Shown: in pieces, positions 3,248 to 40,744 of the stretch
Position numbering within the stretch: position 1 is the first letter of the stretch
How the letters are laid out: each line of letters begins with the position of its first letter
Source: Botryllus schlosseri
Taxonomy: Eukaryota
NCBI GenBank assembly: GCA_051294905.1
Contig: CM119380.1
Span: forward strand, 1,860,001 to 1,924,000
Length of the DNA stretch: 64,000 nucleotides
Reading direction: 5' to 3'
Translations under genes and position numbers: made by a program
The notes under the pieces: generated by a model
The model's database searches: none
Told to the model about the DNA's origin: nothing
Seen by the model: only the letters and a program-made list of their open reading frames with translations

Positions 3248-3253
3248 AGTACT

Positions 3254-3420
3254 CAGTGTTGGGATGACTCGAGTCATGACTTGACTCGAATCACTTTTGT
3301 AGTGGCGCCATAGAGCTACCACTACAACTTTGGTAAAATTACTTGACTTGACTTGACTCGGCGTATCAGAAATGTGGATTGACTCGTGACTCGGAGCAAA
3401 ATTTACGAGTCAATCTCTAG
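3254..3420. mobile_element. hAT MITE left-end fragment
   Basis: Starts cagtgttggg, followed by multiple gacttgactc/gactcg subterminal repeats; no matching right end seen. Confidence 0.5.
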
Positions 3421-7780: not shown

Positions 7781-7829
7781 CTTCTTATAGTGAAGACAAT
7801 GTTAACGAAGAAGTGGATCCTGACACTTG

Positions 7830-8340: not shown

Positions 8341-8414
8341 TTGATATGTTACTCGAAACTGGCACCTGGACAGGCAATGATACAAATGCAACATCTTTAA
8401 CATCTTGGCGCCTT

Positions 8415-8550
8415 CGAATATATTGCACGTGCAAGAAAATGATGATGGGTCCCCCATGGCAGAATGTACGAGATGCAAAGACTGGTATCATTTTCGCTGT
8501 GTGTCAGGCAATGTCCATCATCCAAAATGGATATGCGACCTTTGCCTGAA
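8415..8550 (+). pseudogene. PHD finger of the KDZ polyprotein
   Basis: IYCTC (one frame) + ENDDGSPMAECTRCKDWYHFRCV..WICDLC (next frame): C4HC3 pattern with a 1-nt frameshift. Confidence 0.85.
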
Positions 8551-8779
8551 AAAGGTGGTACGATCGGTGACGCCCGCGTTTCGGAAGGAATACGAAGAAA
8601 TTCAGACTGTAGGCGAGTTGTTAAACAACTCAACAGACAATCGAGTTACCGAACTTTACAAGGCTGTGCAAAAGATGACACCGAAATTGTCATTGCCAAG
8701 AGATGATGCTATTTCGGTGGGAATTTTGTCTCTGGAGGAATACTGGGAAAACATTGATAACCACAGAAAAAGGGATTTA

Positions 8780-9061
8780 ATGGGAATCAATCATCGGCAT
8801 CCCAGGTTTCAGATATGTTTTCTCATTGTGTTCTCGGAATCTTGCAGTGACACATCTACTTTACTCTCCACATTCTTGCATGAATTAGCACATGTCATAC
8901 AGTATGAGGAGAAGGTTTATGGAGCGTCTCACGGCAGTGGGTTCAAAAAAATTGGCAGACGCGTCATCAAATTGGTGTCTCGAAATAAACATCTCCTCCC
9001 AAAAGCTTTTGCAAAAGTAGAAATTAACGAAAGGTTAGTGTTAACTGCAAAATGCTCGTAA
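8780..9061 (+). pseudogene. SprT-like zinc metalloprotease domain ending the KDZ polyprotein
   Basis: TFLHELAHVIQYEEKVYGASHGSGFKKI: HExxH plus a downstream HG..F motif, in the same open frame as the PHD C-terminal half. Confidence 0.7.
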
Positions 9062-9099
9062 TTTTCCAAACATGATTGTCACTTACCGTAATACATTTC

Positions 9100-9900
9100 C
9101 TAGAAGTCGCATTGCTCTTGATTTCATTTTATGTTTTGATCTGCATTGTCTGAGGTGTTTCATAACCTCCAGAGTCATATCAGCTGCTGTGACATTAAAA
9201 TCGTGCATTTTTATTCCTGTGCCCACTGTAAATAACTTATTTGCCTTCGTGGTTTCTGACCTTTCGTCCATTATTTCTGACTTTTTGCTTCCTTGAATTT
9301 TCCAGGAAGAACTTGCTAACCTACATTGTTGCATTGCTCTTGATTTGATATTTTAACCTGCACTGTTTGAAGTGTTTTATAACCTCCATAGTCATATCAG
9401 CTGCTGAAACATTGAATTCGTGTATTTTTGGGCCTGTACCCAAGTTTTTTTGAAGAAATTTCCTAACCTGCAACGTTTCAAGTGTTTCATAACCATATGA
9501 TTCTTATCTCATGCCGTAACATTAAATTCGTGCATTTCTGTTCCTGTGCCCACTGTAAATAACTTATCTTCATTCGTTCTTTCTGACCTTTTGTCTCGTT
9601 AATTTTTTAGTAAGAACTTGCTAACCTGCATTGTTGCATTGCTCTTGATTTGATTTTATATTTTAACCTGCACTGTTTGAAGTGTTTTATAACCTCCAGA
9701 GTCATATCAGCTGCTGAAACATTGAATTCGTGCATTTCTGGGCCTGTACCCAAGAATTGTTAGGAAAAAGTTGCTAACCTGCAACGTTTCAAGTGTTTCG
9801 TAACCACATGATTCTTATCACATGCCGTAATATCGAAGTCGTGCATTTCTTTTCCTGTGCCCACTGTAAATAACTTATCTTCATGTGTTGTTTCTGACGT
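9100..9900. repeat. Diverged tandem repeats (~110-bp subunits, ~300-bp period) 3' of the KDZ ORF
   Basis: gcattgctcttgattt...cataacctccagagtcatatcagctgctg and cctgtgcccactgtaaataacttat each recur three times. Confidence 0.8.
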
Positions 9901-11384: not shown

Positions 11385-14300
11385 TCGGACATGGTGTCTT
11401 GGGCGTGTTAGGCCTGTGTTGACACTAGGACATCGTGTCTGGAGCGTGTTCGGACATCATGTCCAGGGTGTGTTCGGCCTGTGTTGCCAATCAGACATCG
11501 TGTCTGGGGCGTGTTCGGTCTGTGTTGTCATTCAGACATGGTGTCTTGGGCGTGTTCGGCCTGTGTTGATACTCGGACATCGTGTCTGGCGCGTGTTCGG
11601 ATATTATGTCTGGGTCGAGATCGGCCATTCAAACATGGTGTCTGGGTTGTGTCCGGACTGAGTTGACACTCGGACATTGTGTCTGCGGCGAGTTCGGACA
11701 TCATGTCTGGGACGTTTTCGGACTGGATGTGGGATGTGTGTTCGGACTGGGTTACCACTGGGGAATCGTGCCTGGTACTACAACTGACCTCATAGTGAAT
11801 ATATAGCAACTATCCTCATTTCAAACATGACTATCCTCATTTCAAACATGAGACTAACCTTATTTCAAACATGACTATCCTTATATCAAACATGACTATC
11901 CTTATTTCCAAAATGATTATCCTTATTTCGAACACGAGACTGACCTTATTTCAAACATGACTAACCTTATTAACATCGTGTCTGGGGGGTGTTGGGACTG
12001 TGTTGCCAATCGCACATCGTGTCTGGGGCATGTTCCGGCATCATATCTGGGTTGTGTTCGGCCTGTGCTGCCATTCAGACATTATATTATGTCTGGGGCG
12101 TGTCGGCCTGTGTTGACACTCGGACATCGTGTCTGCGGCGAGTTCGGACATCATGTCTGGGGCGTGTTCGGCCTGAGCTATTGCCATTCAAACATAGTGT
12201 CTGGGGCGTGATCGGTCTGTGTTGCCATTCGGACATGGTGTCTTGGGCGTGTTCGGCCTGTGTTGATACTCGGACATCGTGTCTGAGGCGTGTTTGGACA
12301 TCATGTCTGGGGTGTGTTCGGCCTGTGCTGCCAATCAGACATGGTGTCTTGGGCGTGTTCGGCCTGTGTTGATACTCGGACATCGTGTCTGGCGCGTGTT
12401 TGGACATCATGTCTGGGGTGTGTTCGGCCTGTGCTGTCAATCGGACATCATGTCTGGGGCGTGTTCGGCCATTCAAACATGGTATCTCGGATGTGTTCAG
12501 ACTGAGTTGACACTCGGACATTGTGTCTGGGGCGTGCTCGGTCTGTGTTGTCATTCAGACATGGTGTCTTGGGCGAGTTATGCCTGTATTGACACTCGGA
12601 CATCGTGTCTGGCGCGTGTTTGGACATCATGTCTGGGGTGTGTTCGGCCTGTGCTGTCAATCGGACATCATGTCTGGGGCATGTTCGGCCATTCAAATGT
12701 GGTGTCTGGGTTGTGTTCGGACTGAGTTGACACTCGGATATCGTGTCTGGGGCGTGTTCGGTCTGTGTTGCCAGTCGAGCATGATGTCTTGGGCGTGTTC
12801 GGCCTATGTTGATACTCGGACATCGTTTCTGGGGCGTGTTTGGACATCATGTATGGGGTGTGTTTGGCCTGTGTTGCCACTCGGACATGGTCTCTTGGGC
12901 GTGTTCGGCCTGTGTTGATACCCGGACATCGTGTCTGGGGCGTGTTTGTACATCATGTCTGGGCAGTGTTCGGCCTGTGCTGCCAATCGGACATCGTGTC
13001 TGGGGCATGTTCGGCCATTCAAACATGGTGTCTGGGTTGTTTTCGGATCTGAGTTGACACTAGGACATCGTGTCTGGGGCGTGTTCGGTCTGTGTTGCCA
13101 TTCAGACATGGTGTCTTGGGCGAGTTAGGCCTGTATTGACACTCGGACATCGTGTCTGGCGCATGTTTGGACATCATGTCAGGGGTGTGTTCGGCCTGTG
13201 CTGCCAATCGGACATCGTGTCTGGGGCGTGTTTGGACATTATGTCTGGGGTGTGTTCGGCCTGTGCTGCCAATGGGACATCGTGTCTGGGGTGTGTTCTG
13301 ACATCATGTCTGGGATGTGTTCGGACTGGGTTACCACTGGGAAGTCGTGCCTGGTACTACAACTGACCTCATAGTGAATATATAGCAACTATCCTCATTT
13401 CAAACATGAGTATTCTCATTTCTAACATGACTATCCTCATTTAAAACATGAGACTATCCTTATATCAAATATGACTATCCTTATTTCTAATATGATTACC
13501 CTTATTTCAAACACGAGACTGACCTTATTTCAAACATGACTAACCTTATTAACATCGTGTCTGGGGGGTGTTGGGACTGTGTTGCCAATCGCACATCGTG
13601 TCTGGGGCATGTTCCGACATCATATCTGGGTTGTGTTCGGCCTGTGCTGCCATTCAGACATTATGTCTGGGGCGTGTCGGCCTGTGTTGACACTCGGACA
13701 TCGTGTCTGCGGCGAGTTCGGAATCGGACATCATGTCTGGGGCGTGTTCGGCCTGTGCTATTGCCATTCAAACATGGTGTCTGGGGCGTGCTCGGTCTGT
13801 GTTGTCATTCAGACATGGTGTCTTGGGCGAGTAAGGCCTGTATTGACACTCGGACATCGTGTCTGGCGCGTGTTTGGACATCATGTCAGGGGTGTGTTCG
13901 GCCTGTGCTGCCAATCGGACATCGTGTCTGGGGCGTGTTTGGACATCATGTCTGGGGTGTGTTCGGCCTGTGCTGTCAATCGGACATCGTGTCTGGGGCA
14001 TGTTCGGCCCTTCAAACATCGTGTCTGGGTTGTGTTCGGACTGAGTTGACACTCGGATATCGTGTCTTGGGCGTGTTCGGTCTGTGTTGCCATTCGAGCA
14101 TGATGTCTTGGGCGTGTTCGGCCTATATTGATACTCGGACATCGTTTCTGGGGCGTGTTTGGACATCATGTCTGGGGTGTGTTCAGCCTGTGTTGCCACT
14201 CGGACATGGTCTCTTGGGCGTGTTCGGCCTGTGTTGATACCCGGACATCGTGTCTGGGGCGTGTTTGGACATCATGTCTGGGCAGTGTTCGGCCTGTGCT

Positions 14301-16060
14301 GCCAATCGGACATCGTGTCTGGGGCATGTTCGGCCATTCAAACATGGTGTCTGGGTTGTTTTCGGATCTGAGTTGACACTAGGACATCGTGTCTGGGGCG
14401 TGTTCGGTCTGTGTTGCCATTCAGACATGGTGTCTTGGGCGAGTTAGGCCTGTATTGACACTCGGACATCGTGTCTGGCGCGTGTTTGGACATCATGTCA
14501 GGGGTGTGTTCGGCCTGTGCTGCCAATCGGACATCGTGTCTGGGGCGTGTTTGGACATTATGTCTGGGGTGTGTTCGGCCTGTGCTGCCAATGGGACATC
14601 GTGTCTGGGGTGTGTTCTGACATCATGTCTGGGATGTGTTCGGACTGGGTTACCACTGGGAAGTCGTGCCTGGTACTACAACTGACCTCATAGTGAATAT
14701 ATAGCAACTATCCTCATTTCAAACATGAGTATTCTCATTTCTAACATGACTATCCTCATTTAAAACATGAGACTATCCTTATATCAAATATGACTATCCT
14801 TATTTCTAATATGATTACCCTTATTTCAAACACGAGACTGACCTTATTTCAAACATGACTAACCTTATTAACATCGTGTCTGGGGGGTGTTGGGACTGTG
14901 TTGCCAATCGCACATCGTGTCTGGGGCATGTTCCGACATCATATCTGGGTTGTGTTCGGCCTGTGCTGCCATTCAGACATTATGTCTGGGGCGTGTCGGC
15001 CTGTGTTGACACTCGGACATCGTGTCTGCGGCGAGTTCGGAATCGGACATCATGTCTGGGGCGTGTTCGGCCTGTGCTATTGCCATTCAAACATGGTGTC
15101 TGGGGCGTGCTCGGTCTGTGTTGTCATTCAGACATGGTGTCTTGGGCGAGTAAGGCCTGTATTGACACTCGGACATCGTGTCTGGCGCGTGTTTGGACAT
15201 CATGTCAGGGGTGTGTTCGGCCTGTGCTGCCAATCGGACATCGTGTCTGGGGCGTGTTTGGACATCATGTCTGGGGTGTGTTCGGCCTGTGCTGTCAATC
15301 GGACATCGTGTCTGTGGCATGTTCGGCCCTTCAAACATCGTGTCTGGGTTGTGTTCGGACTGAGTTGACACTCGGATATCGTGTCTTGGGCGTGTTCGGT
15401 CTGTGTTGCCATTCGAGCATGATGTCTTGGGCGTGTTCGGCCTATATTGATGCTCGGACATCGTTTCTGGGGCGTGTTTGGACATCATGTCTGGGGTGTG
15501 TTCAGCCTGTGTCGCCACTCGGACATGGTCTCTTGGGCGTGTTCGGCCTGTGTTGATACCCGGACATCGTGTCTGGGGCGTGTTTGGACATCATGTCTGG
15601 GCAGTGTTCGGCCTGTGCTGCCAATCGGACATCGTGTCTGGGGCATGTTCGGCCATTCAAACATGGTGTCTGGGTTGTTTTCGGATCTGAGTTGACACTA
15701 GGACATCGTGTCTGGGGCGTGTTCGGTCTGTGTTGCCATTCAGACATGGTGTCTTGGGCGAGTTAGGCCTGTATTGACACTCGGACATCGTGTCTGGCGC
15801 GTGTTTGGACATCATGTCAGGGGTGTGTTCGGCCTGTGCTGCCAATCGGACATCTTGTCTGGGGCGTGTTTGGACATCATGTCTGGGGTGTGTTCGGCCT
15901 GTGCTGCCAATGGGACATCGTGTCTGGGGTGTGTTCTGACTGGGTTACCACTGGGAAGTCGTGCCTGGTACTGCAACTGACGTTATAGTGAATATAGCGA
16001 CTATCCTCATTTCAAACATGAGACTAACCTCATTTCAAACAAAGTTGACCTTATTTCAAA
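11385..16060. repeat. GC-rich complex satellite with higher-order blocks
   Basis: Motifs cggacatcgtgtctggggcgtgtt and cggcctgtgttgccaat are repeated throughout. The block marker gggttaccactggg occurs at 11749, 13328, 14647 and 15942, each followed by AT-rich ctatcctYatttcaaacatga repeats. Confidence 0.95.
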
Positions 16061-17177
16061 CCAATCGATCCAACCTTCCTCAAATGATACGCATGTAGGC
16101 TATATTCGAAAGCATGTCGAATAAGGTATTTGTATTGAAATAAACTCGAATAAGGTATTTGTATTGAAATAAACTCGAATATCTTCGGTCGACACTCGTA
16201 AAGAGAATCATTTCTGCTCACCTGATATATCAGGCAAAACGTACCGGGATTCCGATCCGGCTAGCAGTAACTGCAGAGTTTGGCCAAGAAAGTGTAGTGG
16301 AGGACTCAAGTGGAGCAATAATTGCCAGAAAAGAAAGTATGAACGGGAAAATAGAACTGTCGCTTGAAACGTCATTACGAAACCAAACAACAGAACTATT
16401 ATAATTGCTGACGTCTGAAACTGACGATCACCCATTCACCCCTGACGAGACCAAAGGGAAGACTGAAGTGGTCCTGGCGGAATTTCGGCAGAATATTTGT
16501 GATCACGTGAAACAATATTTTCGCGAACGCAGAATATTAACCCTCAACCGATGTACGGCAAATGTCATATTTCAGACTGGATGCGAAAGTGTACCTGACC
16601 TATAATTTAGATAATTAACACATCATTGGAAAGAGCGTTCAAATTACTTTATTTAAAATCGATTTCTAGATTCCAGATCGTCCTGCTTCATTCTCTCGGT
16701 GAACGTCGTAGCGATAGGACGTGCCTTCAGCGCGATCATTACGTTTGCGAATTAGTCCGGAGAAAGCCTTTGTAATTAGTTCTAGGGGCATTCGTCTCGC
16801 CTTACAGCGATACTGTTTGTCCATTGCTATAGTTGTAGCCAGACGTTCTAAGATGAGCGGATCTGGCGGGCATAAGCGCCCAGCTAGTGAGGAAGCCGAA
16901 GGTCCTGCAACAAAAGGTAGGAGTAGCGGATCTGTTATCCTCTGCCCGGATGACACCTCGGTAGTTATTTCAGGAATCGCTAAACCTCTGCGACGGTACA
17001 ATCCGATTACTATCAATCGCAGTTTAGTGCGAGTCATAGGAGGTTCGTACAAGGGGATTAAGGTCCTTCCCTCGGGAAACCTTTGTGTAGTTTGTTCTAA
17101 CTCAAATCAGGTGACGAAACTCTTGGCGTGCACCGATCTTGGTGAGGGGAAAATTAAAATTGAAATCAAGGCAGAGC

Positions 17178-20100
17178 CAGTGGCGGCTCGTGACAATATC
17201 GGGTGGTGGGGCAAGGGCTGCAAGCGACTTTTTATCAAGATGACGTCACAATGACGTTTTCCAACGTAAACAAGTAACTTAATGATGTTACGGTAACATG
17301 AATTTCCCGACAACAGTGATTTTAACGTATGTGCCACGAGAGGTCTGCCGGTGAGCTGTGACTTGAAGTGTGGTAACTGCGTAAACGGCGTACGGAACAA
17401 AGATTCAACGCGGTTCATGTTCGCACTAGACCTGACTAATTATCTGCAGAAATGGAAATGACTATAACTCGAGAGATTGCGTAAGCCTAATTGGAAAGGT
17501 CAACGAGTTCGGACACATACCCAATTGTTATCTCATACATTGGGCCTGTCATATTGAATCCAAAACAGCATTCTGAAGAACCAAGAATAGCAGTCTCGGA
17601 AACTCGGTCTCGGTACAGCATAGGAGATTTTGGCCTTGAAACTGGAGACTGTAACACGACACATATGGTTTTATTACTGTCTATAGGTCTGCTGCGAAAT
17701 CGCCTTTGGAAAATATATTACCGAATATATACGTGGGTGAAAGCCGTACACTGTTACATGACATCATCGAGAAGTAGCCTCATGGCCAGGCCGTGTTATT
17801 TTTGGCATTTCAGGAGCCAGATGCCAAAACTGCCAAAAATAAAAAATTGAAAATGCCAAAAATAAGCAATTTTGGCATATGCCAAAAATAACACGGCCTG
17901 CCAAATAGTGTATTTCGTTCATGGTGTTGTGTTAACAGGACCGCGTTACAACCGAGAAGAGCGTTTTTGAAAGGCAGGTTTCTTAATCTGGGTCAAGCCC
18001 ACCCATTAGGGGTGAAAGCATGGTGTCCTAAATGGTGTGGGCACAGCGAGATTGAACGGCTGACTGCATTTGGCTTTACGTCATACTTTCCATTTGTCCA
18101 AAGGCAATTATAAGACCACTTTTTACCGGCTTGTCGAGCGCTAAATTTGATAAAACGGGTATCAATGAGAAGCTGCCGCAGTACTGCTTATTAAAATATA
18201 AATTATATTCTGCTAATAGAACTGGAACCCCCAAAATCAACCACGATTTTTGCATTGTGATCGAGTTGAACATTGTGAGGCAACAAACTGTCTGGCTATT
18301 TCTGAGCTGCATAGTCTCGTTTTGCCAGACAGTCTTGTTGCGTCAATGTTCTTAAACAAGCTAACCTTCCCAGGACTTTTCCATGCGAGTTGGTACTATT
18401 AAAGCCACCTGAAGTGACAAAAGTCCTCCGTATCGGTAGACTGAAGGAGAAATGATAGTCGGGCTACTAAATAGAATGTGTTGAGAGACAACACAGGACA
18501 CTCCTGGAAAAGGATCGGGAAGAAAATCCTTTCCGCGATGAGATCGATTGCACTGGCGAAGTGATCTCTTTTCATGATGCATGGAAGCCGGCTCGGCCCT
18601 CCAAAGATTTTGAAGCTCTGAGAACCATTTGTGGATGACTGCCAACATTATTTCCCTCAACGGCTACTGTTGAAGCCGATATTTCACAGATTCGCTAGGC
18701 GAGAAATGAATTTAGGAGAAACTTAGCTGACCTGAGTTTGGAAGCACTGTTACAGTGCAAACGATTTAAGTCTATTCAACAGCTGTAACAATCAGCTGTT
18801 GAGCGTGTTTGTTAGGCTTTTCTTTCTTTTTTTGCTTATTGGCACCGATTCCGATGGATACTGCACATTTTGTGGTTTCGTTTGATATTATTAACCTATG
18901 AAATCGTTAGGTTTTTTTCTTCTTCTTATTGTTTGTTGGCGCTGATTATACGTGGATGCTGCACATTTTGTGGTGTCTTTTGACAAACTAGCCCAAATAA
19001 AGCGTTTTTGTGACTAATTCGAGGCTGAAACTATCTATTTAGAGGACGATGCCCAAACTGCCAAAAATAAAAATCGAAAAATGCCAAAAATAAGTTATTT
19101 TTGGCAGTTTTGGCATATGCCAAAAATAACACGGCCTGCTCATGGCCCTTTTCGGTATGGTACACTGTCAAAATAATGCAAACAGACCGAATTTTGCGTA
19201 AAATTTACTGAGGAATAGGCTGATCAAGTGATCAGCTGTTAGCCGACATCGAAAACAAAATAGCTATCGCGCTTGACAGGGGGTTGTAAGCAAATGGCTT
19301 GAAGGCCCCAATTTCACGGTGAAATTGACATTGGAGAATATAATATCAAAGTAAATATTTGAATGCAAATGAGAATGATATCATCATCTCGTCACCTATC
19401 TCAGTATGGAACACAGTTAACGTTACCACAGATACACCGGCTTTTGCGTGAAATCCGCAATGCGTTGTAGGCTAAAGTGTCAGATCTGAGCACATCTCTA
19501 CCATATTCGACCTTGATAACGAAATTACTGCCCTAATCATTGAGTGTCAACCTTGAGACTTGGCACAGCGTTCGATACTAAAATCAAAACACACCGTGCA
19601 AAATCTCATGACAGATCTAGGTAAGGAGCATCGTTAAAATCAATAGAGACCAATACCGGCTTTGCGTAAAATCTGTTAGCGATAAATGACGAGTCAGCTC
19701 TCACTCGACTTAGGAAACGAAATTACCGCTAACATAGTTCAGTGACAAACTTAAAACTTGGTACAGCGTTCGATACTAACATTAAGACTTACCGTGCCAA
19801 ATGTCATAACCGATCTCAGTATTGAACATCGTCAAAATCAATGGATACCAATACCGGCTTTCGAGTAAAATCTGTTTGCGATACATGACGGATCAGCACA
19901 CACTCAACTTCGGAAACGGATTTACTACCCTAAACTTTAAGTAGAAACCCTGAAACTTGGGGCAATGTTAAATACCACCATCACGACATGACATACCAAG
20001 TTTCAAGAGTTTTCATGGTGTGAAACACCATCAAAATCGACCTATAATAGCAAAGGTCGACTAAACGCATATGACGGTAACCGAGTTCAGATATAGATAC

Positions 20101-29661: not shown

Positions 29662-31191
29662 CAGAGGTCTCAAACTCAAATGTGCTCGCGGGCCATTTCC
29701 TAGTTTTTGATGACGCCGCGGGCCGCAGCATCAATAATCGGGATATTCAATGCATAGGTTCCAACTAGGCCTTATTTGACGGGTCCTTGCAGACATGCAC
29801 TCCACAGACATCGTGAAAATGTGATTTACTAATGCATTATTCACGCTTGACACGAAATAAAATCACATTTTCCAATATTTGAATAATTTTTTGTGCCGGG
29901 CATATTTTTTCTAACTAATAAGCTATAGATATAATATGAGACGATGCATCATGACATTGTAAAACTGTCGGGTTATATTAGTGCAGCTAGTGGACCTTTG
30001 ACGTGCCACAATTTCATGTATATATTTTAAAATATACTGAAGATTGATCTGATATCAGAGCATTTGAGCGGTGTAGCCTAATCCTGGTTTTGATAAAGTC
30101 GTGATAAATGTAGGCTATTGTTATTGTCATTGCCAAAGTCAAATTAAATCAGCGTTAGATTTTGCCTTCGATTATTATTGGAACATATCAATAACAACTT
30201 GAATATAATAATTATTGAGGCACAGTAATAGCATTTGTTCTTAGCCTTTTTAGCGATTGTACCCCTTGTGCTTCCAATGAGATTTCTCGTAGCGCCTGTC
30301 CATTTTCAACACAATTTCGGATGGCACCTATATATTAAAATCAGAAAGCCCATTCAGACAAGACTATTTCCCAGTTGAATAAATTGGCCAAGAAAATATT
30401 CCACAGCATATAGGCCTCATTCCACAATGCATCTCGGACACCCTGATGTGGTGCTTCGTACCCCGATGGGGTCTACGGACCCTGGTCAAGAACCCCTGGA
30501 ATAGAAATGTCCGAACGGCGAATAATTCATTGGTGTTACAGCTGTAGAGCGTAGTGCTACCTACCCTACTCGCCTACGACAATAACATGGACAAGAGAAC
30601 AAACAACACCCAGCATGTAACCAACTATACGTCACGGGCGTCATAGAATTCCAATGGTTGCCATACTGACCTGATTAGATAGTTATATACCCTAAGCAGC
30701 GCAAGCTACGGACCTTTTGATATATTACTATCCTCGATGACAGTTTCATAGATTGTTGCGCCCGTAGGATTAACAAGTTACCGTTTCGATTCCCAAGTCC
30801 TTGTCTGATTTTAACGTTTGATCCGACTCAACTCGAGGTCATTTTTATTTAATCCCTCAGTCTATCCAAAACCGAGTAATTTTACGAGAAGGTCGCACCA
30901 ACCAAATCACAATTTGAAGTCACGAATCATCAACGGGTCATGTTCTATCGTCATGACCTAGAAATGTGACGAAATAGCTGATCTTCTACCTCATGGTAGC
31001 TTCTAAAAGTGATGTGATAGTGAAGTTTGTTGAGATCCCACTGATTTTTATAATAGTTTCAGATTGAACTTTAAGCTATTATATCAAATAAAATATATGG
31101 CACTTGAATGTATTGTTGAATACTTGAAATTCCAAAATGCCGTCGCGGGCCGCACAAAATGCTCTCGCGGGCCGCGTGTTTGAGACCTCTG
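29662..31191 (+). mobile_element. hAT family C, copy 1, in LINE ORF2 3' part
   Basis: TIR cagaggtctcaaac/gtttgagacctctg; TSD ctctaggc (29654-29661, 31192-31199). Confidence 0.95.
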
Positions 31192-31546
31192 CTCTAGGCT
31201 GAACGGTCATCTACACAGAATTAAATGTCATCAAAATGGCCTTTGTGATGCATGCGGGATCAAAGAAACCGTCGAGCATTTCCTCCTCCATTGCCCTAAA
31301 TATGACCGTGCCAGGATCAATCTAATTCAGACTGCTGACCAAAACAGAGTACCCCTAACGCCCGAGTCCCTACTCACAGACGCACATACTATATGGCCGG
31401 TCATCGAATTCACGATTTCAAGTGGCAGAGATATATAAAGAATTGTAATTCCTTCAGATAGTACGGGAGTATTTATTGCCAGATATCGTCCTGGGGCAAA
31501 AAGCCGAGTAGCTAAGCCCCACTACCCCCCTCATACCTACCTACCT

Positions 31547-31970
31547 AGATCGTCCTGCTTAATTACGAACACGAGGACCAAAGCTACGTTATATTGCGCT
31601 GTCGGGCATTGTTGGCCGCCATTTCAATGTATGGCAAATTCCACATTTAAGGCCGGATTCAAGAGTGTACCTCACCTACAATTCAGATAATTAACTCTTC
31701 ATCGGAAAGAGCGTTCAAATTACTTTATTTAAAATCCATTTCTAGATTTCAGATCGTCCTGCTTAATTACGAACACGAGGACCAAAGCTACGTTTTATTG
31801 CGCTGTCGGGCATTGTTGGCCGCCATTTCAATGTATGGCGAATTCCACATTCAAGGGCGGATTCAAGAGTGTACCTCACCTACAATTCAGATAATCATCA
31901 TAATCATCGGAAAGAGCGTTCAAATTACTTTATGTAAAATCCATTTCTAAATTCCAGATCGTCCTGCTTA
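31547..31970. repeat. ~205-bp tandem repeat into which the LINE inserted (matching partial unit at ~16590-16688)
   Basis: agatcgtcctgctta at 31547, 31751 and 31956; the upstream flank ggaaagagcgttcaaattacttta matches the unit. Confidence 0.9.
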
Positions 31971-32039
31971 GTATCTCAGTGAGCCAAGCCACGACGAGGA
32001 TTATTTTTCTGGAATAATTCCCGTCGATAAAAAGCAAGA

Positions 32040-32560
32040 GTTGGCAGTCTCCATTTTATACTCGATATCGCAATCTTGAGAAAGAGTGCATGGATGTCAG
32101 CAACAGCAATTGATTCCGACCTGGAAAGTCAATGCGACGATAACGTTTATTACTCTCCGTCATTTTACACCAAGTTCGTTGAAGTAATCGCTAGTCGACT
32201 CGGCGTAACCTCGCGTCTTCTGCTAGGAGACTTATCAAGGCACAGTCGTCCTGAAATTCCTCCAAATCATTATATGAAATATGCAAATGGTGGAAACAAC
32301 TGAAGAAATATGCTGGGCGCTCAACCTGCGACGGTACAAGAACGCAAGGTTCAATTGAGCAATTTTTCCGGCAGTTGAAGCGAAACTATCGAAAGAACAA
32401 GCGTGCATCAAATGTACCAAAGTTCGTGTGGCACTACGAAGATGCAACGAGAGTGACTGGCAAATCGTTTGCTGATGATTTAGTGAAAGTCAAGTACGGC
32501 TCGCGACCCGTACCGAACCGGAAACTCCAAATATATCATCAAGAATAACAACCGGTAAAT
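32040..32560 (+). pseudogene. C-terminal part of a NOF-FB-like (MULE/Foldback) DDE transposase
   Basis: Frameshifted motifs SPFY, NVYYSPSF, LLLGDLSRH, RTQGSIEQFFRQLK; the last motif is the presumed catalytic Glu region. Confidence 0.6.
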
Positions 32561-32747
32561 AAAAAGCCAAAATTTCTAGAGTCGAAATTCAAGAAACGAC
32601 TCCAAATAGAAGGATATTACGGAACTCCCACGGCCGCCGAAAAAAATCAGGGATCGTAACTCAAAATCATCAACACCGTAGGGAAAATTCGCAGAAAAGT
32701 TATGGAAGTCGATACAAGAACACGCCTTATCGACTGTCGGTACGAAA

Positions 32748-34943
32748 TTGACTGACACTGCGATCAAATCGAAATTCGAAGTCGCTGTGACGTATGCTGA
32801 TATAGTGTCTGTTTGCCCCAACCCATCGGAGAAAATCATTCAAAATATCAATGAAATCATGACAACTGACACCAAACCAGGATGGTCAACATACGGTATT
32901 GTCAATGCTTTTGTAATCCAGTGTGCGCTCAACGGAAATTCTCAGTTAAATCAAAGACATTTTGGGTATCTGACAACGGACATGACTCATTTCATACTTT
33001 GTGGAAATAAACCTCGAGCAGTTCCAGACATTATCCTTGATCACAATCGGCTCTTACGCGAGGTCGTACTTTTACCAATTCTTATTCGTCGGAATTTCAA
33101 TCATTTTTCTCTTCTCTGTTTTCAAGAAAAGAATAAAATAATCACATTTTACGATTCTGCTGGTTGTCGTGATACGGAGGAGCAACACGAGATTTTATCG
33201 TCAATTACAGAATAATGAGAATACCTATCTGGTATTTCTAGAATAGATCTGAACAGCATGATGAAGGAATTTTTCGGCGACTTCCTTCAAACCGACTCTT
33301 CTTGTGGTGTTTTTGCATGTATGGCAGCGTGGAGCATATGTTTGCAAGACAAGCACCGTACACATTTGCAAACTGACTTCCGTCATAAAATCATTTGGGA
33401 GCTACGTCAAGACTGCCTGACATCATCCCACGTTGTGCGAAATGCTGAGGTTGAATGTGGCATTCTTACCCAGATACCTGGACTCGAAAATCTAGGAAAT
33501 ACATGCTGGTCCAATTCTGTTATGCTAGGAAATACATGCTGGTCCAATTCTGTTATGCAAGCATACTCTCATGTCATACGGCAGAGATTGGGGCCACTGG
33601 GTGAGAGTAGGCAAATTCACGGGGAAATCGCAAATATACTTATCCCCTTGACAAACTTGAAGGCGGTTGCACGTGACGTATTAATGAATACTGTTAGAAT
33701 TGCATGTGAGAGAACTAAACTGGAGTTTGGTAAGCAGCACAATTGTCTTGAGTTCTATTCACTATCTTCCTTGCCACAAGTATTGGAAGATATTCGTTGG
33801 AAGCACGAATTGAAATACGAGCGGATCATCCACTGCAACGACTGTCAAACGAATGGATCAACAGTACACCGAGAAAAAATCTTCAACGTGAATTGCGGAG
33901 TTGCATCGATAGCAGAAGCATTTCAGATTTCACAACTCAAATGTGAAAAATGTGATTCCGCGACAAATACTAATGTCATGCTCACTGAAATTCCGAATCC
34001 AGTGCGCCTCAACCGTGCGAATTCTATGGGTAAAAAGATGGAAAATACTGTCTTTGTCAACCGGAACCTCGACATTCAGGGACCTGATCAAGATTGGATC
34101 GGATATTCGCTCAAGGCTGTGGTTGCACACATCGGATCGGATGGAGACGGACACAATATCGCATATTCAATTCATTCGAAATGCACGGTACGGCTATGCA
34201 ACGACGAACTTGTAGAATTTGTGGATTCGAACGCAGCTTTCAATGCCATGTCAAGGAATGGATACCTCTTTATTTATCTCAGAAAGATGAAGCGAAGATT
34301 ACCGCTGCAAAAATTCTCCAAGCAAGAATATTTCATGAAAAGTCTGCCATTGAAAATGATGGATATCAATGAAGGAACTAAAGCAATCGGTGACACAATA
34401 TTTCAGGACATTGTAAATATTTGTCATCTTACATTACACGAGTCGCAAAAGGACGTCCGTAGTCAGCGACATTCCCTTTTTCTCGAAAACAAATACGCTG
34501 AATTGCAGAAAATGATCGTACCTGTTGGACAAAATGACAGCGAAGAAATCAAAGTCATATTCCAATATATCAAAAACAAGACCCGCGTCTTACATGCGAG
34601 ATGGATCAGACATTTGAACACAGGAACAGAATACGTCGCATACAACATATTTTCGCGAATAATTTTCAACAAGGCTGTGGTGCATGAGGACATTGAGCTC
34701 ATGAAGAAATTAGCACCAACGCACAGCAGCGACAAGTATTTCAAGTTGGTTGTGTTGCAAGAAGTGGCTTTGATGTTTCTGTCCATTACTGAGAAGAGAA
34801 CATACGAAGAAGTTTTGGAGAATCTGAATGTACCATATAAATGGCGAAAAAAAGCAATTACAAGTTACGTTTCTACGGCTTTCGCATCGTATTTTGAATA
34901 TACTTTTTTGTTGAAGAACTATCGAATTTCATTTCATTGGTAG
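32748..34943 (+). pseudogene. Ulp1/C48 SUMO protease followed by a USP/C19 ubiquitin-specific protease and a helical C-terminal region
   Basis: ORFs 32748-33215 and 33258-34943 share a frame (TAA TGA between them). C48: NHFSLL, FYDS, QTDSSCGVF. USP: GLENLGNTCWSNSVMQ, QHNCLEF, LKAVVAHIG..DGHNIAY, CNDELV. Confidence 0.8.
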
Positions 34944-35599
34944 TTTTGTTTTGTTCGTTTACTTTTGTTCTGAAATCGCACAAGACTTTTAAATAGCATG
35001 AAGACCGACATTATGCAGAGATTTGTGTCACTAAATATTGTACTGAAGTCAGAGGTATAAACGCATCTCTTTAGTTTGTGGTGAGCAATATGCCGTCGTT
35101 AAGGCATATAAGTTGAGTCAGCATTATGAGAAAACTGCTAGTGAGATACAGACATCGGGTGAGGATTGCAGAGAGCGCGAATTTCGGATGACTTACTAGC
35201 AAAACCAGGATTATTTTACCAAACTGCACAAACCTCGGAATGCAGCGACCAAAACCAAGAATAATGACCCTGGATATAGACCTAGTATTTTTGTAAATTA
35301 ACCTCGAAATCGCAAATTCGCAACTAAAGCATCCCAACAAAACTATCACGTGGGTCGGACATATCGCAGTATCGAACGTTCCGACCAAGCCACATGCGAA
35401 AGCCACGAAATCCCACCTTTTTTCTCAAACATATCCATTGAAAAATACCAACGACCCTATTCAGTAGTGTTTAGCTCATGGCCCAAATTGCGGGGACCAT
35501 CTCCATATGCACCTTATCGGACCAGTCCCAATTTGAATTGAATAAGAAACTCTGTCTAAAACCCCAACATCTATGACTCAATATAGGTGGCCTCAAAAC

Positions 35600-36430
35600 T
35601 CAAATACCGTGGTAACCCACCTATAAATTTTCAATAATGTCCTATACGCGGGGAAAGTATCCAAAATGCACCCTATCTGACCGGCCCCAATTTCCACACA
35701 ACTGAAATCGAGTGAAAAACTGCCCGAAAACCCCGAAATCGTTTGGCTCCCACAGCTATAACTCTACACGGGTGGCCCTAAGTACCGTAGTCACCCATCT
35801 ATAAATTTTCATTAATATCCTATGTGGAGAAAGTGTCCAAAATGCACCCTATCTAACTGGCCCCATTTTCCACACTACTGAAATTCAGGAAGAAACACTT
35901 CCCGAAAACCCCGAAATCGTTTCGCTCCCACAGCTATGACCCTATACAGGTGGCCCCCACTACCGTAGTCACCCACCTAGAAATTTTCACCTATAGCCTA
36001 TCCTATATGTGGAAAATGTCAAAAATGCACCCTATACGACTGGTCCCAATTTCCACACAACTAAAATTCAGGAAGAAACACTTCCCGAAAACCCCGAAAT
36101 CGTTTCGCTCCCACAGCTATGACCCTATACAGATGGCCCCCACTACCGTAGTCACCCACCTAGAAATTTTCACCAATATCCTATGTGGGGAAAGTGTCCA
36201 AAATGCACCCTATCTAACTGGCCCCCTTTTCCACGCAACTGAAATTCAGGAAGAAACACTTCCTGAAAACCTCGAAATCGTTTCGCTCCCACAGCTATGA
36301 CCCTATACAGATGGCCCCCACTACCGTACTCACCCACCTATAAATTTTCCCCAATATCCTATGTGGGGAAAGTGTCCAAAATGCACCCTATCTGACTGGC
36401 CCCAATTTCCACGCAACAGAAATCGAGTGA
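35600..36430. repeat. ~178-bp tandem repeat, ~4.5 copies
   Basis: gaaagtgtccaaaatgcaccctat variants at about 35653, 35829, 36012, 36190 and 36368. Confidence 0.93.
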
Positions 36431-36599
36431 AAAACTCCTCCGAGAAACCCCGGGACACCTTGAGACCATGCATATCTAACTCGAGATTACAGTTGATTAA
36501 CCCCCATAGCCTTGGCATCGTTTGTGAGTAATCGACTTTGTGAGTAATCGACAGAATACCGCGGCGGTGTCATCATTTTTACTTCACTTTCGAAGCGAT

Positions 36600-37950
36600 G
36601 AGCGGAAAATCTTTGGTCCCAAGGTGTGTCCACGACTCTTCATTTGCGATGGGGGCTTCGTGATCATGAAACCAATCTTGTCCAATTATATGGATGAGAC
36701 TCTGCAATCTTACATCAACCGATGCCATCGCGTTGTTACTTGATTAGCAACAGAAAGCGACCTGAAAAAGCCATTCCTTCATTTATGTGCGAGTCATCTC
36801 ATGAAAAACTTCAAATCGTTGTGCTCGAAAAATAAGAAGAGTTTCGGGACTTGATGTACATTTTCGGTTTGCTGGTGGCACACCAGCTCGTAATTTTATT
36901 GCATACAACCAACCAAACAATGGCAGAAAACTCGATGCGTTTCTTTCTTGACAGCATATATCATGATGAGGAATTTAGATTTCATTCTAGCAACATTGCT
37001 GAAGATTTGGTCGGGCGATGTTGGAGGTAGAATCTGCTGGGTCGTCAGGTGAAAATCTTTTTCATATGCCTGAGATGTTCAATTCCTTCAAAGATAATTT
37101 TTTCACCGAAATTGCCGTTGATTACGAGTCTTCTCACCGGTGATTTGAGTAGATATGGAAACTCGAGCTCGTATGGGAAATATGGAAAGTTTTACAAATC
37201 GCTGAAAGGTCGCAAATATCAAAACTTGACTCGCAACTGTAGGACTGCTGGTATAATGGAAAATTCGAATCAGGAGCTGAAGCGTTGTCGTTTGCAAGGA
37301 CGCCGATTTTCTGGACTAGACGAGTTCGCATGTAATCGTCTATGATGATTTGCATAAGTCCTTGATTCGTGAGTACCATGACAATCTTCAATCATTTCCA
37401 CCCGTCAAAAGCAGAAGGCGCGCCAGTGTTCCACCTGAAGATGTTGAGGTTTGGAAAAAAATCACAGAAATGAGAATCCTAATAAAAATATTGGGAAATA
37501 TTTCCAGCCACCCCGGAAACCTCTGCGCGGTGTGACAAGCTGTAAGAGTAAAGCACTTGTCGGTAATGGTGATCTGGACAATCACGAGACTGGTGATCTC
37601 GACGATCACGGCCGAGAAAGGCTGGTGACGACTCATCCCAATATTCCAGCTCAACAACAGCATAACCACGGAGATACGAAAAACACCCTCACTGACATTG
37701 GAGTCACTTCAGACAAAACCAGGAACCTCCTCCCATTCAAATTCACAGGTATATATAGACATTCCCCTCCAGCACTCATAGTACGCAGTAAGTTAGCGAT
37801 TTCGAAATGATACAATCTCCCATTTCAGACATTGCTTCGCTGTGGACCTCGAGGATGGAAAAAAACCGGATCGAAGCTGTTGTGAACCACGCGCCACTCT
37901 TCAAGTCTGATCTAATGACTCTCAAAGGTCCTGGCTTAATGATGCGGTAT
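36600..37950 (+). pseudogene. Second, diverged NOF-FB-like MULE transposase relic, followed by the start of a Ulp1-like domain
   Basis: PRLFICDGG, ETLQSYINRC, FLHLCASHLMKNFK, LLTGDLSRYG, RTAGIMENSNQELK; near 37890-37950 LFKSDLMTLKGPG-LNDAV. The hAT copy at 38004 follows shortly after. Confidence 0.6.
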
Positions 37951-38003
37951 GTTTTAGCGTCGTGTATGATATAGCAATTTATAACTGCATGGTTTGTCTA
38001 CTA

Positions 38004-38997
38004 CAGAGGTCTCAAACTCAAATGTGCTTGCAGGCCAATTTTCCAGTTTTAGACGACGCCGCGGGCCGCAGCATCAATAAGGGCATTCTATGTCTTTCCA
38101 AGTAGGCCTTATTTGACGGGATGAAATTGTCCTATTCAAAAGCAGCCGACCTAACATACTGACATTCCGTACACATTGCAAAAATGTGATTTACTTTTGT
38201 AGCAATTTGGACCTGGCACGAAAAAAATTATCACACTTATAACTATTTAAATAGAATTGCCGTTGTACTTGGTAGATAATATAGTTATAAGATATCGACA
38301 CCGTGCAAGCGTACAAATGCATGATGTCATCATAAAAGCTATCTCGTTATAATTTTGTAGCTACTATGACTATTTTGAATTTAACAGATTGATAATAGAT
38401 ATTGATCTGATATCACAGCATTTAGGGTTGGGCAGTGTAGCCCAATCCAGGATTCGGGAATACTCCTGATAATTCGGCTATTAATCTCATCATGATTGTC
38501 CTTATGGTCAAATAATACCTTGGAATATTGGGGCATATAAATAATAATATAAATATATTGTAAATAATTTATTGTAAATAAAATATAAGTATATTGTAAA
38601 TATAAACGCCAAACATCGTTACATCGATTGAGCGTACCACTGCGGTACTCAGTACTCAGATGTAACTAACATGTTGCCAATAGTTCGCGTCCAAGTCACA
38701 ACTTACAAATTTCAGTCACAAGTCATCCAAGGGTCTGGTTTTATCATCATGAATTGGAAATGTGACGAAATAGTTAATCTTCTACTGCATGGTAGCGTTT
38801 GCAATTGATGTGACGGTGAAGTTTGATGAATAGTTTCAGGCTTTCGGAGCAATTTGAGAAAAAAATTCAACTTTTAAAACCTTGAAAGGTATATATCTGG
38901 CACTTATATATGGTCAAGGTATATATCTGGCACTTATATATGGTCAAACACTTGAAAATCTAAAATGTCGTCGCGGCCCGCGTGTTTGAGACCTCTG
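38004..38997 (+). mobile_element. hAT family C, copy 2
   Basis: Both termini present (cagaggtctcaaac ... gtttgagacctctg), but flanks differ (gtctacta vs ctataaaa). Confidence 0.9.
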
Positions 38998-40446
38998 CTA
39001 TAAAACGTTTTTAGATATAAGAGCTTATAATTCACCCAAAAACTACTCTAAAAATCCTTGAAATCTCAACAAACTTCACGATCACATCAATTTTAAAAAC
39101 TACCATGCGGTAGGAGATCAGGTATTACGTCACATTTCCAGTTAATGATGATAAAACATGACCCGTTGATAATTGAGATTTGGTTTGGTCCGACCTCTCG
39201 TAAAACTGCTCGATTTCGGATTGACTGGGTAATTAAATAAAAATGACTCGAGTTAAGTCGGGTCAGAGCAGGACTGGCGACTCGGAACGGTGACTTCGTA
39301 ATCCTACGGACAAAACAATCTATGAAACTGTCATGGGGGAATAGTAATATATCAAAATGTCGTAGCTTGCGTTGCGTATATAGCTTTTTGATCAGGTCAG
39401 TATGGCAAACATTGGCATTCCGTGACCCCCGTGACGCATAGTTGGTTATATGTTGGGTGTTGTTCTCTTTATCCATGTTATTATCGGTGGCGAGTAAGGT
39501 AGTAGTACGCTCTACAGCTGTAACACCAATGAATTCTTCGCCGATTGGACATTTATATTCCAGGGATCCTCAATCAGGGCTCGTAGACCCATCGGGGTAC
39601 GAAGCAGCCAAGCGGGGTGTACGAGAGAGATTGTGGAATTAGGCCTATGTGGAATATTTCTTGGCCCATTCGTTCAACTGGAAAATATTCTTCACGGCTC
39701 GTGCGATTTTATGTTAATGGGCTTTATTCTGATTTTAATATAGACCATCAGAAATTGTGTTGAAAATGGACGGGTTACGATAAATCTCATTGGAAGCACA
39801 AGGGGTGCGATCGCTAAAAAGGTTACGAAGCAATGCTATTACTATGGCTCAATAATGGTTATATTCAAGTTTATTGATATATTTCAATAATAATCGAAGG
39901 CAAAATCTGACGCTGATTTAGTTTGACTTTTGCAATGACAGTAACAATAGCCCATACTTATCACGTCTATATCAAAACCAGGTTTAGCCTATACACTATA
40001 CAGCTTATATGCTCTCATATCAAAGCAATCATGAGTAGATTTTAAAATATTCTACATGAAATTGTGGCACGCCAAAGGTCCACGGACAGTTTTACGATGT
40101 CATGATGCATCGTCTCGCATGATGTCTTTAATAAAAAAAATAGGCCCGTCACAAAAACAATTTTATTCAAGTATTTGAAATTGGGCATTTTTTCCGTGTC
40201 AAAAAGCGTGAATAAGACAATGGTAAATTACGTTTCCACGATGTTTGTGGAATGCCTGTCGGACAAGGTTCCGTCAAATAAGGCATACTTGGAAAAATAT
40301 TGAATATCCCTATTATTGATGCTGCGGCCCGCGGCGTCATCAAAAACTAGGAAATGGACCCGCCAGCACATTTGAGTTTGAGACCTCTGTTTTATAGCAC
40401 TTGAAATTCCCAAATGCCGCCGCGGGCCGCGTGTTTGACACCTCTG
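38998..40446 (-). mobile_element. hAT family C, copy 3: inverted body (38998-40389) plus forward right-end stub (40390-40446)
   Basis: The left TIR is on the minus strand at 40376-40389 and the body is the reverse complement of copy 1. The stub ttttatagcacttgaaa...gtgtttgacacctctg continues the body. Confidence 0.9.
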
Positions 40447-40744
40447 ATTTGTGTTGCTCACTCCCAAATTGACGCCATCTGTTTAAACCAGCTTTCAGTT
40501 TCTGTCACTGCAGAAAGGACAGGAAAACCAAGGTTACGGTATCGAAGACAATTTCAACGAGGGAGGCCACGACGAGGAATATTTTTCAGACTAGATTCGT
40601 GTTTTTAGCCTATAGAAATTGTTCATTGATATATGCAACTATCAGGCTACGCAAACGCAATTATACGCAGCGACACTTGAGAGTAACGGGTGTAAAATAT
40701 TACGAAAAATGAAACTTCAAATATAAAATTGACTTACTGTAGAT

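Follow-up and report, generated by a model that had tools for sequence, protein, structure and literature searches.

The genome of Botryllus schlosseri contains a locus at which a decayed transposase sequence is followed by two protease-like domains, one of the SUMO-protease type (peptidase C48, Ulp1/SENP-like) and one of the ubiquitin-specific type (USP, C19), raising the question of whether these proteases belong to a transposon, to a host gene or to an accidental neighbour, and of what they might do. The window analysed here is a stretch of 64,000 nucleotides (NCBI GenBank assembly GCA_051294905.1, contig CM119380.1, forward-strand positions 1,860,001 to 1,924,000), and all coordinates are counted from its first letter. 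We consider it very probable that positions 31984-36452 are what is left of a Mutator-superfamily transposon of the foldback type, a DNA element present in multiple copies and probably of a NOF/Rehavkus-like branch; this copy is dead and truncated at its 5' end (Table 1). Still present are the end of the transposase, the two proteases with the tail module behind them and what is probably part of the right arm; missing are the DDE core, the PHD finger and the left arm.

Layout and condition of the window copy

Table 1 Features of the element copy and its immediate surroundings, in window coordinates.
Feature	Position	Strand	Remarks
204-bp very high-copy repeat, two copies, bounding the element's 5' truncation	31547..31970	.	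95-97% identity; outside the element
C-terminal remnant of Mutator/NOF-type transposase	31984..32656	+	motifs LLLGDLSRH, TRTQGSIEQFFRQLK; frameshifted, with stops
Divergent C48 (Ulp1/SENP-like), N-terminal two thirds	32682..33212	+	His 33102-04, Asp 33153-55
TAATGA, two adjacent in-frame stops within C48	33213..33218	+	
C48 C-terminal part and linker to USP	33219..33473	+	Gln 33288-90, catalytic Cys 33303-05
USP (C19) deubiquitinase domain	33474..34277	+	Cys box, zinc-ribbon cysteines, His box, Asn-Asp; Pfam UCH
Exact 33-bp tandem duplication, Cys-box peptide LGNTCWSNSVM doubled	33492..33557	+	copy-specific lesion
C-terminal tail module (~220 aa), then stop codon	34278..34943	+	profile match to relatives' tails
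178-bp tandem repeat array, ~5 units	35564..36452	.	probable remnant of right foldback arm
Second, divergent related transposase fragment (copy B)	36528..37342	+	mid-DDE region and tail; low copy

Without a DDE core, and with frameshifts, the TAATGA double stop and a USP Cys box doubled by the 33-bp duplication, the copy is disabled. From 32682 to 34940 the forward strand reads in one frame with TAATGA as its sole interruption, so the single frame described in an earlier note on this DNA, made from the sequence alone, holds for C48 and USP save for the double stop. It does not extend to the transposase tail, which has at least two frame changes, pieces in two frames, and stops; here sibling copies differ from the window at 32043, 32640 and 32087 by indels of 1, 2 and 4 nt, respectively. 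The duplication, which the earlier note had missed, is absent from contigs of runs X5 and X10 (33491 joined to 33525), and the 11 additional residues behind the Cys box probably disable the USP of the window copy. Raw RNA-seq reads indicated essentially no transcription of this copy, Rfam gave no match on 31000-38000, the 574-aa ORF had no match in a word-indexed protein search, and an exact-protein look-up of the window ORF returned no record. Unrelated repeats surround the copy, and the region is rich in nested insertions.

The transposase remnant is collinear with positions 1249-1418 of relative P0005, 1031-1194 of P0012 and 191-360 of P0019 (tblastn, hmmsearch), which bears out the initial description of a NOF-like transposase tail with C48 and USP following on the same strand; its pieces in the window had no Pfam match. 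The Pfam MULE match of P0005 lies below threshold (E = 0.067), and by Atlas features the transposase falls among MULE clusters (0.90-0.94). One step further, the best Atlas feature hit has as its structural neighbour a cluster with C48 and PHD that is named ‘120.7 kDa protein in NOF-FB transposable element’. An AF2 model of the transposase core, built from three sequences, reached a pLDDT of only 32. The PHD finger was found in P0005 just below Pfam's 24-bit cut-off (E = 1.4e-4, 22.2 bits) and in P0012 at E = 4e-3.

A second transposase fragment (copy B) matches positions 1091-1186 and 1362-1418 of the family profile (hmmsearch) and is also matched by tblastn with P0005, P0012 and P0013-P0022. 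Since its profile coordinates overlap those of the first fragment (copy A), it must come from a different copy; tblastn of window pieces detected no similarity between the two, and the depth of copy B is 30-60 (see below for depths elsewhere).

On the 3' side, depth over the 178-bp array stays element-like (100-770) and falls to ~43 past 36500. We found no inverted partner for the 3' region or for the array within the window; the array is probably what remains of a right, satellite-built foldback arm. In the related loci L011 and L012 the gene is flanked by long inverted arms made of tandem satellite units, the termini of L012 not being locatable by eye, and a search of L001 for terminal inverted repeats (TIRs) found none between its flanks. 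Position 35278, at which loose ends occur in several runs, was considered as an element terminus and rejected because depth stays high to ~36450; subfamily indels explain the loose ends better.

The two protease domains

HMMER, to which the earlier note had looked for both proteases, recognised one of them: UCH was found above threshold, while Peptidase_C48 (PF02902) matched neither the window pieces nor P0001, P0002 or P0005, even at E-values up to 10. The C48 assignment comes instead from family-level comparisons. Specifically, the window pieces align collinearly with P0001, P0002, P0005 and P0012, and 32682-33212 matches the family profile at E = 3.4e-12 (hmmsearch). Searched against the PDB, the C48 family profile had 13 matches, 12 of them to SENP1/2/5/8 (best E = 1.1e-3). 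Through this profile the His, Asp, Gln and Cys of the window domain, in canonical order, align to the catalytic residues of SENP2, in agreement with the tetrad first reported from the sequence.

For structure prediction we took residues 1-250 of the family member P0001 in place of the broken domain in the window; AF2 modelled them at a pLDDT of 72. The top 28 PDB matches of this model in Foldseek were SENP1/2/3/5, Ulp1 or NEDP1 (best E = 1.4e-6, TM 0.5-0.58), and bacterial CE deubiquitinases were also among its structural matches. As modelled, the clan-CE fold of the P0001 C48 is closest to SENP/Ulp1 proteases. Specificity for ubiquitin-like proteins (UBLs) varies among clan-CE enzymes; SUMO would be a candidate substrate of this C48, as would NEDD8, ubiquitin or a different UBL.

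The USP is recognised directly. A 561-aa ORF (33258-34940) matches Pfam UCH (PF00443) at E = 9.8e-13 (48.7 bits, cut-off 23.9) over profile positions 6-254 of 254, and the Cys box, His box and Asn/Asp noted earlier could all be located: the catalytic Cys (GNTCW) at 33504-06, with its duplicated counterpart at 33537-39, the His (GHN) at 34152-54 and the Asn-Asp pair (ND) at 34200-05. A CxxC...CxxC zinc ribbon lies at 33834-45 and 33942-53. These catalytic motifs align with those of P0001 and P0005, and the best phmmer matches of the window USP are transposon-borne USPs. In the PDB, all matches of the window USP were USPs (best E = 0.027), and the USP family profile reached E = 2e-7. Intact copies of the domain may hydrolyse ubiquitin conjugates.

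The region behind the USP is also conserved: a profile built from the tails of L001, L003, L011 and L012 matches ORF residues 395-523 collinearly at E = 4e-4. Pfam had no match on this C-terminal tail, and an Atlas search with the tail module gave a best score of 0.81 (DUF6532), under the meaningful score.

Copy number, architecture and selection in the family

We placed 1854 contigs on the stretch at 80-100% identity. Depth over the cassette was 280-980, while single-copy contigs belonging to the locus itself reached ~14, i.e., ~20-70 times single-copy depth in DNA-run contigs (a summed depth, which is not equal to a true copy number). It was even across C48 and USP, and rose to a summed 13,000-17,000 over the 204-bp repeats outside the element, compared with 300-900 inside it. 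Copies of ~95% identity were also present in a run carrying a second organism label. The cassette is multi-copy in its host and is not a host gene.

The relatives share this layout in more complete form. In P0005, a single ORF of 2074 aa comprises a PHD finger, a MULE-like DDE domain, C48 and UCH; P0019 (988 aa) spans the transposase through to the USP; and P0013/L012, P0012/L003 and L002 are collinear. Transposase and protease are linked at seven other loci (L001, L002, L003, L004, L011, L012 and P0016, the last with transposase and C48 only), and the located members of this family sit behind a transposase. Distant relatives have transposase, C48, USP and tail in identical order, and both this order and the linker recur within their single ORFs at 23-30% protein identity. 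A metagenome scan with the family returned mostly generic USPs, plus L004, in which the order is reversed (transposase-USP-C48) and the C48 matches PF02902 at E = 9e-7, the sole match to that profile. In all likelihood, an intact relative is a single intronless gene that encodes PHD finger, DDE transposase, C48, USP and a ~200-aa tail and lies between inverted arms. The proteases, which had first been regarded as loose cargo, are thus domains of the transposase polyprotein in the intact relatives (P0005, P0019). The initial proposal named three findings that would speak against it, namely a USP that is single-copy, syntenic in relatives or never linked to the transposase in other copies; the multi-copy cassette and the linkage at seven other loci go against each of them.

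These observations bear on two accounts in which the protein is not the transposon's own. One is that a cellular C48-USP gene, or a domesticated gene derived from a transposase, left a pseudogene here that happens to lie beside transposon debris. We regard this as very improbable: the window does have no recognisable termini and has unrelated repeats all around, as this account would have it, but the cassette is 20-70 times deeper than the neighbouring single-copy DNA, with contigs 80-99% identical, and in L011 and L012 the gene lies between foldback arms. Moreover, a search of 1.84 billion representative proteins found 11 with E <= 1e-3, the closest eight of which belong to the same transposase-linked family or to another USP-SWIM fusion. 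The other account, to which we give even less credence, is that a USP from a different element (e.g., a Helentron) landed by chance beside a Ulp1-carrying MULE. Helentrons with UCH have been reported (PMC11417382) and nested insertions are abundant in the region, and yet the C48-USP junction is in frame, the collinear order and linker recur in distant relatives, and DNA depth does not change between the two domains.

Both protease domains have been maintained, as dN between the distant relatives L001 and L003 is 0.39 for C48 and 0.42 for USP (0.25 for the transposase core) while dS is at least 1.75 or saturated. At the level of substitution rates, this comparison shows long-term purifying selection on C48 and USP.

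Possible roles of the proteases and known counterparts

The most likely role of the pair, in our view, would be to free proteins of the host chromatin or of the transpososome from SUMO and ubiquitin. Both proteases would be brought to chromatin by the PHD finger together with the transposase, and would there strip SUMO and ubiquitin off host proteins or off the transposase itself; the outcome could be to counter SUMO-dependent heterochromatin silencing or, alternatively, to keep the complex of transposase and DNA from being ubiquitylated in a SUMO-targeted manner and extracted. That C48 and USP act in trans, stripping SUMO or ubiquitin from host proteins or transposase, seems to us quite possible, if somewhat short of probable. 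Alternatively, the proteases may take ubiquitin and SUMO off their own polyprotein, protecting the transposase from proteasomal turnover and leaving chromatin silencing factors aside. We are doubtful of this alternative while granting it a real chance: through the fusion the transposase has the two activities in cis, and the proteases are about as well conserved as the PHD finger and the tail of the transposase, but the same data fit action in trans too, and the PHD finger of the relatives suggests chromatin targeting.

A more specific and rather unlikely reading is that the C48-USP pair forms a dedicated two-step counter-measure carried by the transposase, in which SUMO would be taken off first and the ubiquitin attached by SUMO-targeted ligases second. 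The element would thereby either escape SUMO-dependent heterochromatin formation or keep its complex of transposase and DNA from being extracted and degraded. In this reading the pair may have been assembled more than once, as transposase-C48-USP in the present clade and, in L004, as transposase-USP-canonical C48. Independent assembly, if true, would suggest that selection has favoured dual deconjugation convergently.

Self-processing, which had also been raised at the outset, fared worse. According to this idea, C48 and/or USP would cut the polyprotein in cis and free its modules, in the manner of viral papain-like or USP-like proteases. All modules do lie in one long ORF, and both protease classes cut after a C-terminal Gly-Gly. 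Against this, the domain junctions of P0005, P0012, P0001, the ORF of L004 and the window copy all lack Gly-Gly, the sole conserved GG sits within the transposase core, and Pfam detected no ubiquitin-like or SUMO-like domain; the reversed order in L004 is also hard to square with fixed cleavage sites. We therefore consider self-processing improbable.

Among known elements, Rehavkus and NOF-FB are similar in having a single long ORF with MULE-like transposase motifs and, in the relatives, a near-threshold PHD finger. Rehavkus has been described from arthropods and annelids only, and in it a minisatellite precedes the 3' TIR (PMC6446971); the tandem array 3' of the ORF in the window and the long, repeat-built inverted arms of the relatives resemble this arrangement. 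NOF-like Atlas clusters already bear Peptidase_C48 and PHD. The family described here differs in the USP and conserved tail module that follow C48, and in a C48 too divergent for Pfam.

Ulp1- or OTU-carrying DNA transposons have long been catalogued, and we know of no tested function for them. KI-MULE/Kaonashi-type plant MULEs carry Ulp1. Ginger2 is another Ulp1-bearing DNA transposon (PMC2836005). Like the present family, these combine a clan-CE C48 protease with a cut-and-paste DNA transposon; here, by contrast, transposase and C48 form an in-frame fusion, with a clan-CA USP as the second protease. Helitron-like elements were found in the HELIANO survey to carry OTU, UCH and Peptidase_C48, with UCH almost only in HLE2 (PMC11417382). 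Deubiquitinase-type domains, UCH included, thus recur in the coding regions of DNA transposons, although those elements encode a rolling-circle RepHel, whereas the present ones are DDE foldback elements with tandem C48-USP in one polyprotein. The impression that USP cargo is unfamiliar accordingly needs to be narrowed: UCH is on record in Helentrons, and among the papers searched we found none that reports either domain from a Mutator or foldback element. In these papers we also found no earlier description of C48 and USP paired in this transposon group. Compared with cellular enzymes (nearest solved structures USP21, USP36 and USP12/46 for the USP, and SENP1/2/5/8 for C48), folds, catalytic motifs and the USP zinc ribbon are alike; the similarity is remote, with no standout cellular orthologue, and the USP is compact (~270 aa).

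In this family a transposase and a chromatin reader share one protein with two distinct ubiquitin/UBL proteases, which occur in both domain orders and under purifying selection; this offers a tractable hypothesis of how transposons may interfere with host control that depends on SUMO and ubiquitin. The window copy is a fossil whose worth lies in independent evidence for the family architecture and for copy number in the genome. The natural intact ORFs P0005 and P0019 are intronless and hence directly expressible.

Protease domains and ends of the window copy

The plus-strand frame that holds position 32682 is open over 32682-33212 and 33219-34940, and the sole break between both stretches is the TAATGA at 33213-33218. 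Within the second stretch, a 561-aa ATG ORF (see table) contains a full-length UCH deubiquitinase (USP) domain (Pfam E 9.8e-13; 48.7 bits at a cut-off of 23.9 bits; profile positions 6-254 of 254), in which Cys box, His box and Asn-Asp pair are all present, as an earlier note on this DNA had claimed, and all four zinc-ribbon cysteines are kept. An exact 33-bp tandem duplication doubles the peptide LGNTCWSNSVM; contigs of two other runs join 33491 straight to 33525, and the duplication is therefore private to this copy or to few copies.

Features with mapped coordinates (window positions unless a locus of a relative is named)
Feature	Position	Strand	Remark
561-aa ATG ORF	33258-34943	+	inside second open stretch
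USP Cys box GNTCW	Cys 33504-06	+	
USP His box GHN	His 34152-54	+	
USP Asn-Asp pair	34200-05	+	
33-bp tandem duplication	33492-33557	+	
Post-USP module	34400-34790; L001 10709-11269; L003 15486-16193; L011 13145-13657; L012 13573-14214		
178-bp tandem array	35564-36452		after ORF

Pfam was less informative for the SUMO protease (C48) domain proposed alongside: of the two domains that the earlier note wanted checked in this way, UCH was matched, while Peptidase_C48 gave no Pfam match on either window piece and is seen via the family profile and a structural model. A full HMMER scan of the 574-aa piece against 1.84 billion representative proteins returned only 11 matches, the best of which (P0001, P0002, P0004 and P0005) aligned from the putative C48 end through the USP, and the window pieces are collinear with the best-matching relatives across the entire C48-like region. 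Three blocks are conserved: GW(L/S)(S/T)...(D/N)A(Y/F), P(I/V)L...NHF.L....(Y/I/V)DS with His 33102-04 and Asp 33153-55, and Q.D..SCGV..C with Gln 33288-90 and Cys 33303-05. When the profile of this region was compared with PDB sequences, 12 of 13 matches were SENP2, SENP1, SENP8 and SENP5 (best E 1.1e-3), with the catalytic His, Asp, Gln and Cys lined up, and the top 28 Foldseek PDB matches of an AlphaFold model of P0001:1-250 (pLDDT 72, pTM 0.74) were SENP1/2/3/5, Ulp1 and NEDP1 (best E 1.4e-6; TM ~0.5-0.58). Profile and model thus agree with the earlier claim: the domain is a divergent clan-CE, Ulp1/SENP-like protease, whose substrate may be SUMO or another UBL.

Upstream, 31984-32656 (+) matches, in order, the C-terminal transposase region of six relatives (P0005, residues 1249-1418, and P0012, P0013, P0016, P0018 and P0019), including the recognisable motifs LLLGDLSRH and TRTQGSIEQFFRQLK, which bears out the transposase tail that the earlier note saw on the same strand and called NOF-like. 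The further claim of one frame holds for the two proteases, save for the TAATGA, but not for this tail, whose pieces lie in two frames with stops between; sibling copies differ from it by indels of 1, 2 and 4 nt at 32043, 32640 and 32087. Homology ends 5' of 31984 at two copies of an unrelated, very high-copy 204-bp repeat (31547-31970), so the window copy has no DDE core, PHD finger or left arm. The 204-bp unit, present there in tandem and as a partial copy 15 kb upstream (16551-16672), reaches a summed depth of 13,000-17,000 in the DNA run, which marks it as a satellite or SINE-like repeat of very high abundance.

Downstream of the USP, a module of ~200 aa is 29-50% identical among L001, L003, L011 and L012 (loci of relatives). 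It belongs to no Pfam family, and its best Atlas lead (DUF6532/DUF6698, fungal clusters, 0.81) is below a meaningful level. Its profile matches residues 395-523 of the window ORF (E 4e-4), so this copy probably retains its full coding sequence at the 3' end. DNA depth stays at element level to ~36450 and then drops about six-fold; we therefore take the 178-bp array to be what is left of the right arm.

Relatives and family architecture

One relative, P0005 (L001, a Tara metagenome scaffold), is a single intronless 2074-aa ORF in which a DDE transposase is combined with a PHD finger (22.2 bits, slightly below the Pfam cut-off of 24 bits; E 1.4e-4), a C48-like domain and UCH (E 9e-20). The same order of transposase, C48 and USP is found in P0019 (988 aa, on a 1.18-Mb contig), and P0013 with its next ORFs (L012), P0012 with its next ORF (L003) and the P0001 contig (L002) are collinear with P0005; P0016 covers transposase and C48. 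Judged by these architectures, the proteases are fused domains of the element's protein rather than cargo. The association of transposase tail, C48 and USP at the locus is confirmed, and the earlier structural reading is supported in its linkage of the three, once corrected for fused instead of cargo proteases and for a window copy that is dead and truncated.

A metagenome contig from JGI (L004) presents the reverse order: in its 1284-aa open frame (1-3852 (+) and onward), a related transposase is followed first by a USP (Pfam E 5e-20) and next by a canonical Peptidase_C48 (Pfam E 9e-7), which carries on past a frameshift. Since Pfam recognises this C48 and not that of the clade of P0005 and the window, the protease pair of L004 was possibly acquired or assembled independently.

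The family transposase is MULE-like: it matches Pfam MULE only at E 0.067, and its Atlas feature neighbours are MULE, SWIM or ZSWIM clusters (0.87-0.94). Structurally, the top feature match has as its neighbour the cluster '120.7 kDa protein in NOF-FB transposable element', in which 45% of members have Peptidase_C48 and 34% PHD; the NOF assignment stays indirect because the predicted transposase structure is poor (pLDDT 32). The L012 gene is flanked by inverted arms (7072-9149 and 15655-18044) of tandem ~207-bp units that are 87-96% complementary, and L011 has the same layout with ~194-bp units and an LTR retrotransposon inserted in the left arm. This is a foldback architecture.

Sequence similarity also reveals annotated tunicate relatives: P0025, an 853-aa 'uncharacterized protein' of Styela clava (LOC120329920), shares 42% identity with the transposase of P0005, and it aligns to the family profile in both the PHD-finger region and the core of the transposase. 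P0008 (1685 aa) has an N-terminal USP, an extended acidic coiled coil in its middle part and, close to the C-terminal end, a SWIM zinc finger; it may be another fusion of the USP-transposase type.

Plant KI-MULEs carry Ulp1/C48, and the combination of PHD and C48 in NOF-like proteins is already catalogued in the Atlas cluster. More widely, Ulp1/C48 domains are well known in DNA transposons such as Ginger (PMC2836005), and UCH, OTU and C48 domains have been reported within Helitron-like elements (PMC11417382). The family fits the published description of Rehavkus, in which a single ORF and a PHD finger are accompanied by a minisatellite that precedes the 3' TIR (PMC6446971). Our literature search, which covered papers and not Repbase, found no description of Mutator or foldback elements that carry a USP, either by itself or in tandem with C48.

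Copy number, selection and possible function

Contigs of four runs were aligned to 31500-37499 at ≥80% identity. The main DNA run yielded 1854 matching contigs (539 at 99+%, 578 at 95-99%, 528 at 90-95% and 209 below 90% identity). Summed depth over the protease cassette was 280-980, compared with ~14 in the adjoining low-copy stretch for error-free contigs of the locus itself; such sums are not exact copy numbers, and they exclude a single-copy gene. Of the findings that the earlier note had named as speaking against its reading (a USP that is single-copy, syntenic or never transposase-linked), none was made. A run labelled as another organism contained pieces ~95% identical. Contigs of an RNA-labelled library, in which DNA carry-over is possible, matched several parts at 88-96% identity and hence derive from other copies; raw RNA-seq reads (2026 run) placed essentially none on the window copy.

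Selection was compared between L001 and L003, the two most complete distant relatives (proteins 53% identical). In all regions dS was saturated or no lower than 1.75, and dN was 0.25 in the transposase core, 0.36 in the PHD region, 0.39 in C48 and 0.42-0.43 in the USP; both proteases have thus been conserved to about the same degree as the PHD finger and transposase tail.

SUMOylation drives piRNA- and KRAB/TRIM28-type heterochromatin formation, and SUMO-targeted ubiquitin ligases link SUMO to the ubiquitin-dependent removal of proteins from chromatin, a two-step pathway that a SUMO protease paired with a deubiquitinase would fit. The most economical reading, which we hold tentatively, is deconjugation in trans: PHD finger and transposase would bring the two activities to chromatin, where the proteases could free host factors, or the transposase complex itself, of SUMO and ubiquitin. 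Proteases that protect the transposase from turnover seem a doubtful alternative. Self-processing of the polyprotein, raised in the earlier note, is unlikely, because no domain junction contains a Gly-Gly (the transposase core holds the sole conserved GG) and no ubiquitin-like domain was found. The family merits experiment; the window locus is a fossil copy.

Neighbouring elements in the window

Directly after the 178-bp array lies a second, divergent NOF/MULE-type transposase fragment (36528-37342 (+)), which comprises the mid-DDE region and tail, has a low copy number in the DNA run, is somewhat nearer the L004-type transposase and is cut off at ~37990 by another element. The junction is a perfect 16-bp tandem duplication (TTTGTGAGTAATCGAC x2) at 36521-36552, exactly where DNA-run depth falls from ~250 to ~43.

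MITE-like elements of ~1.5 kb occur at 29662-31196 and 37990-40446, with termini CAGAGGTCTCAAAC...GTTTGAGACCTCTG and GCGGGCCGC-rich subterminal repeats. Lying in opposite orientations, copies of these elements imitate an inverted repeat of 10 kb that encloses the protease-bearing copy; they are not its arms. Beyond them, 40551-40587 resembles 31973-32009 of the protease-bearing copy (81% over a 37-nt repeat, 95% over a 22-nt core; peptide HDE(E/D)YFS) and may be a scrap of one more copy.
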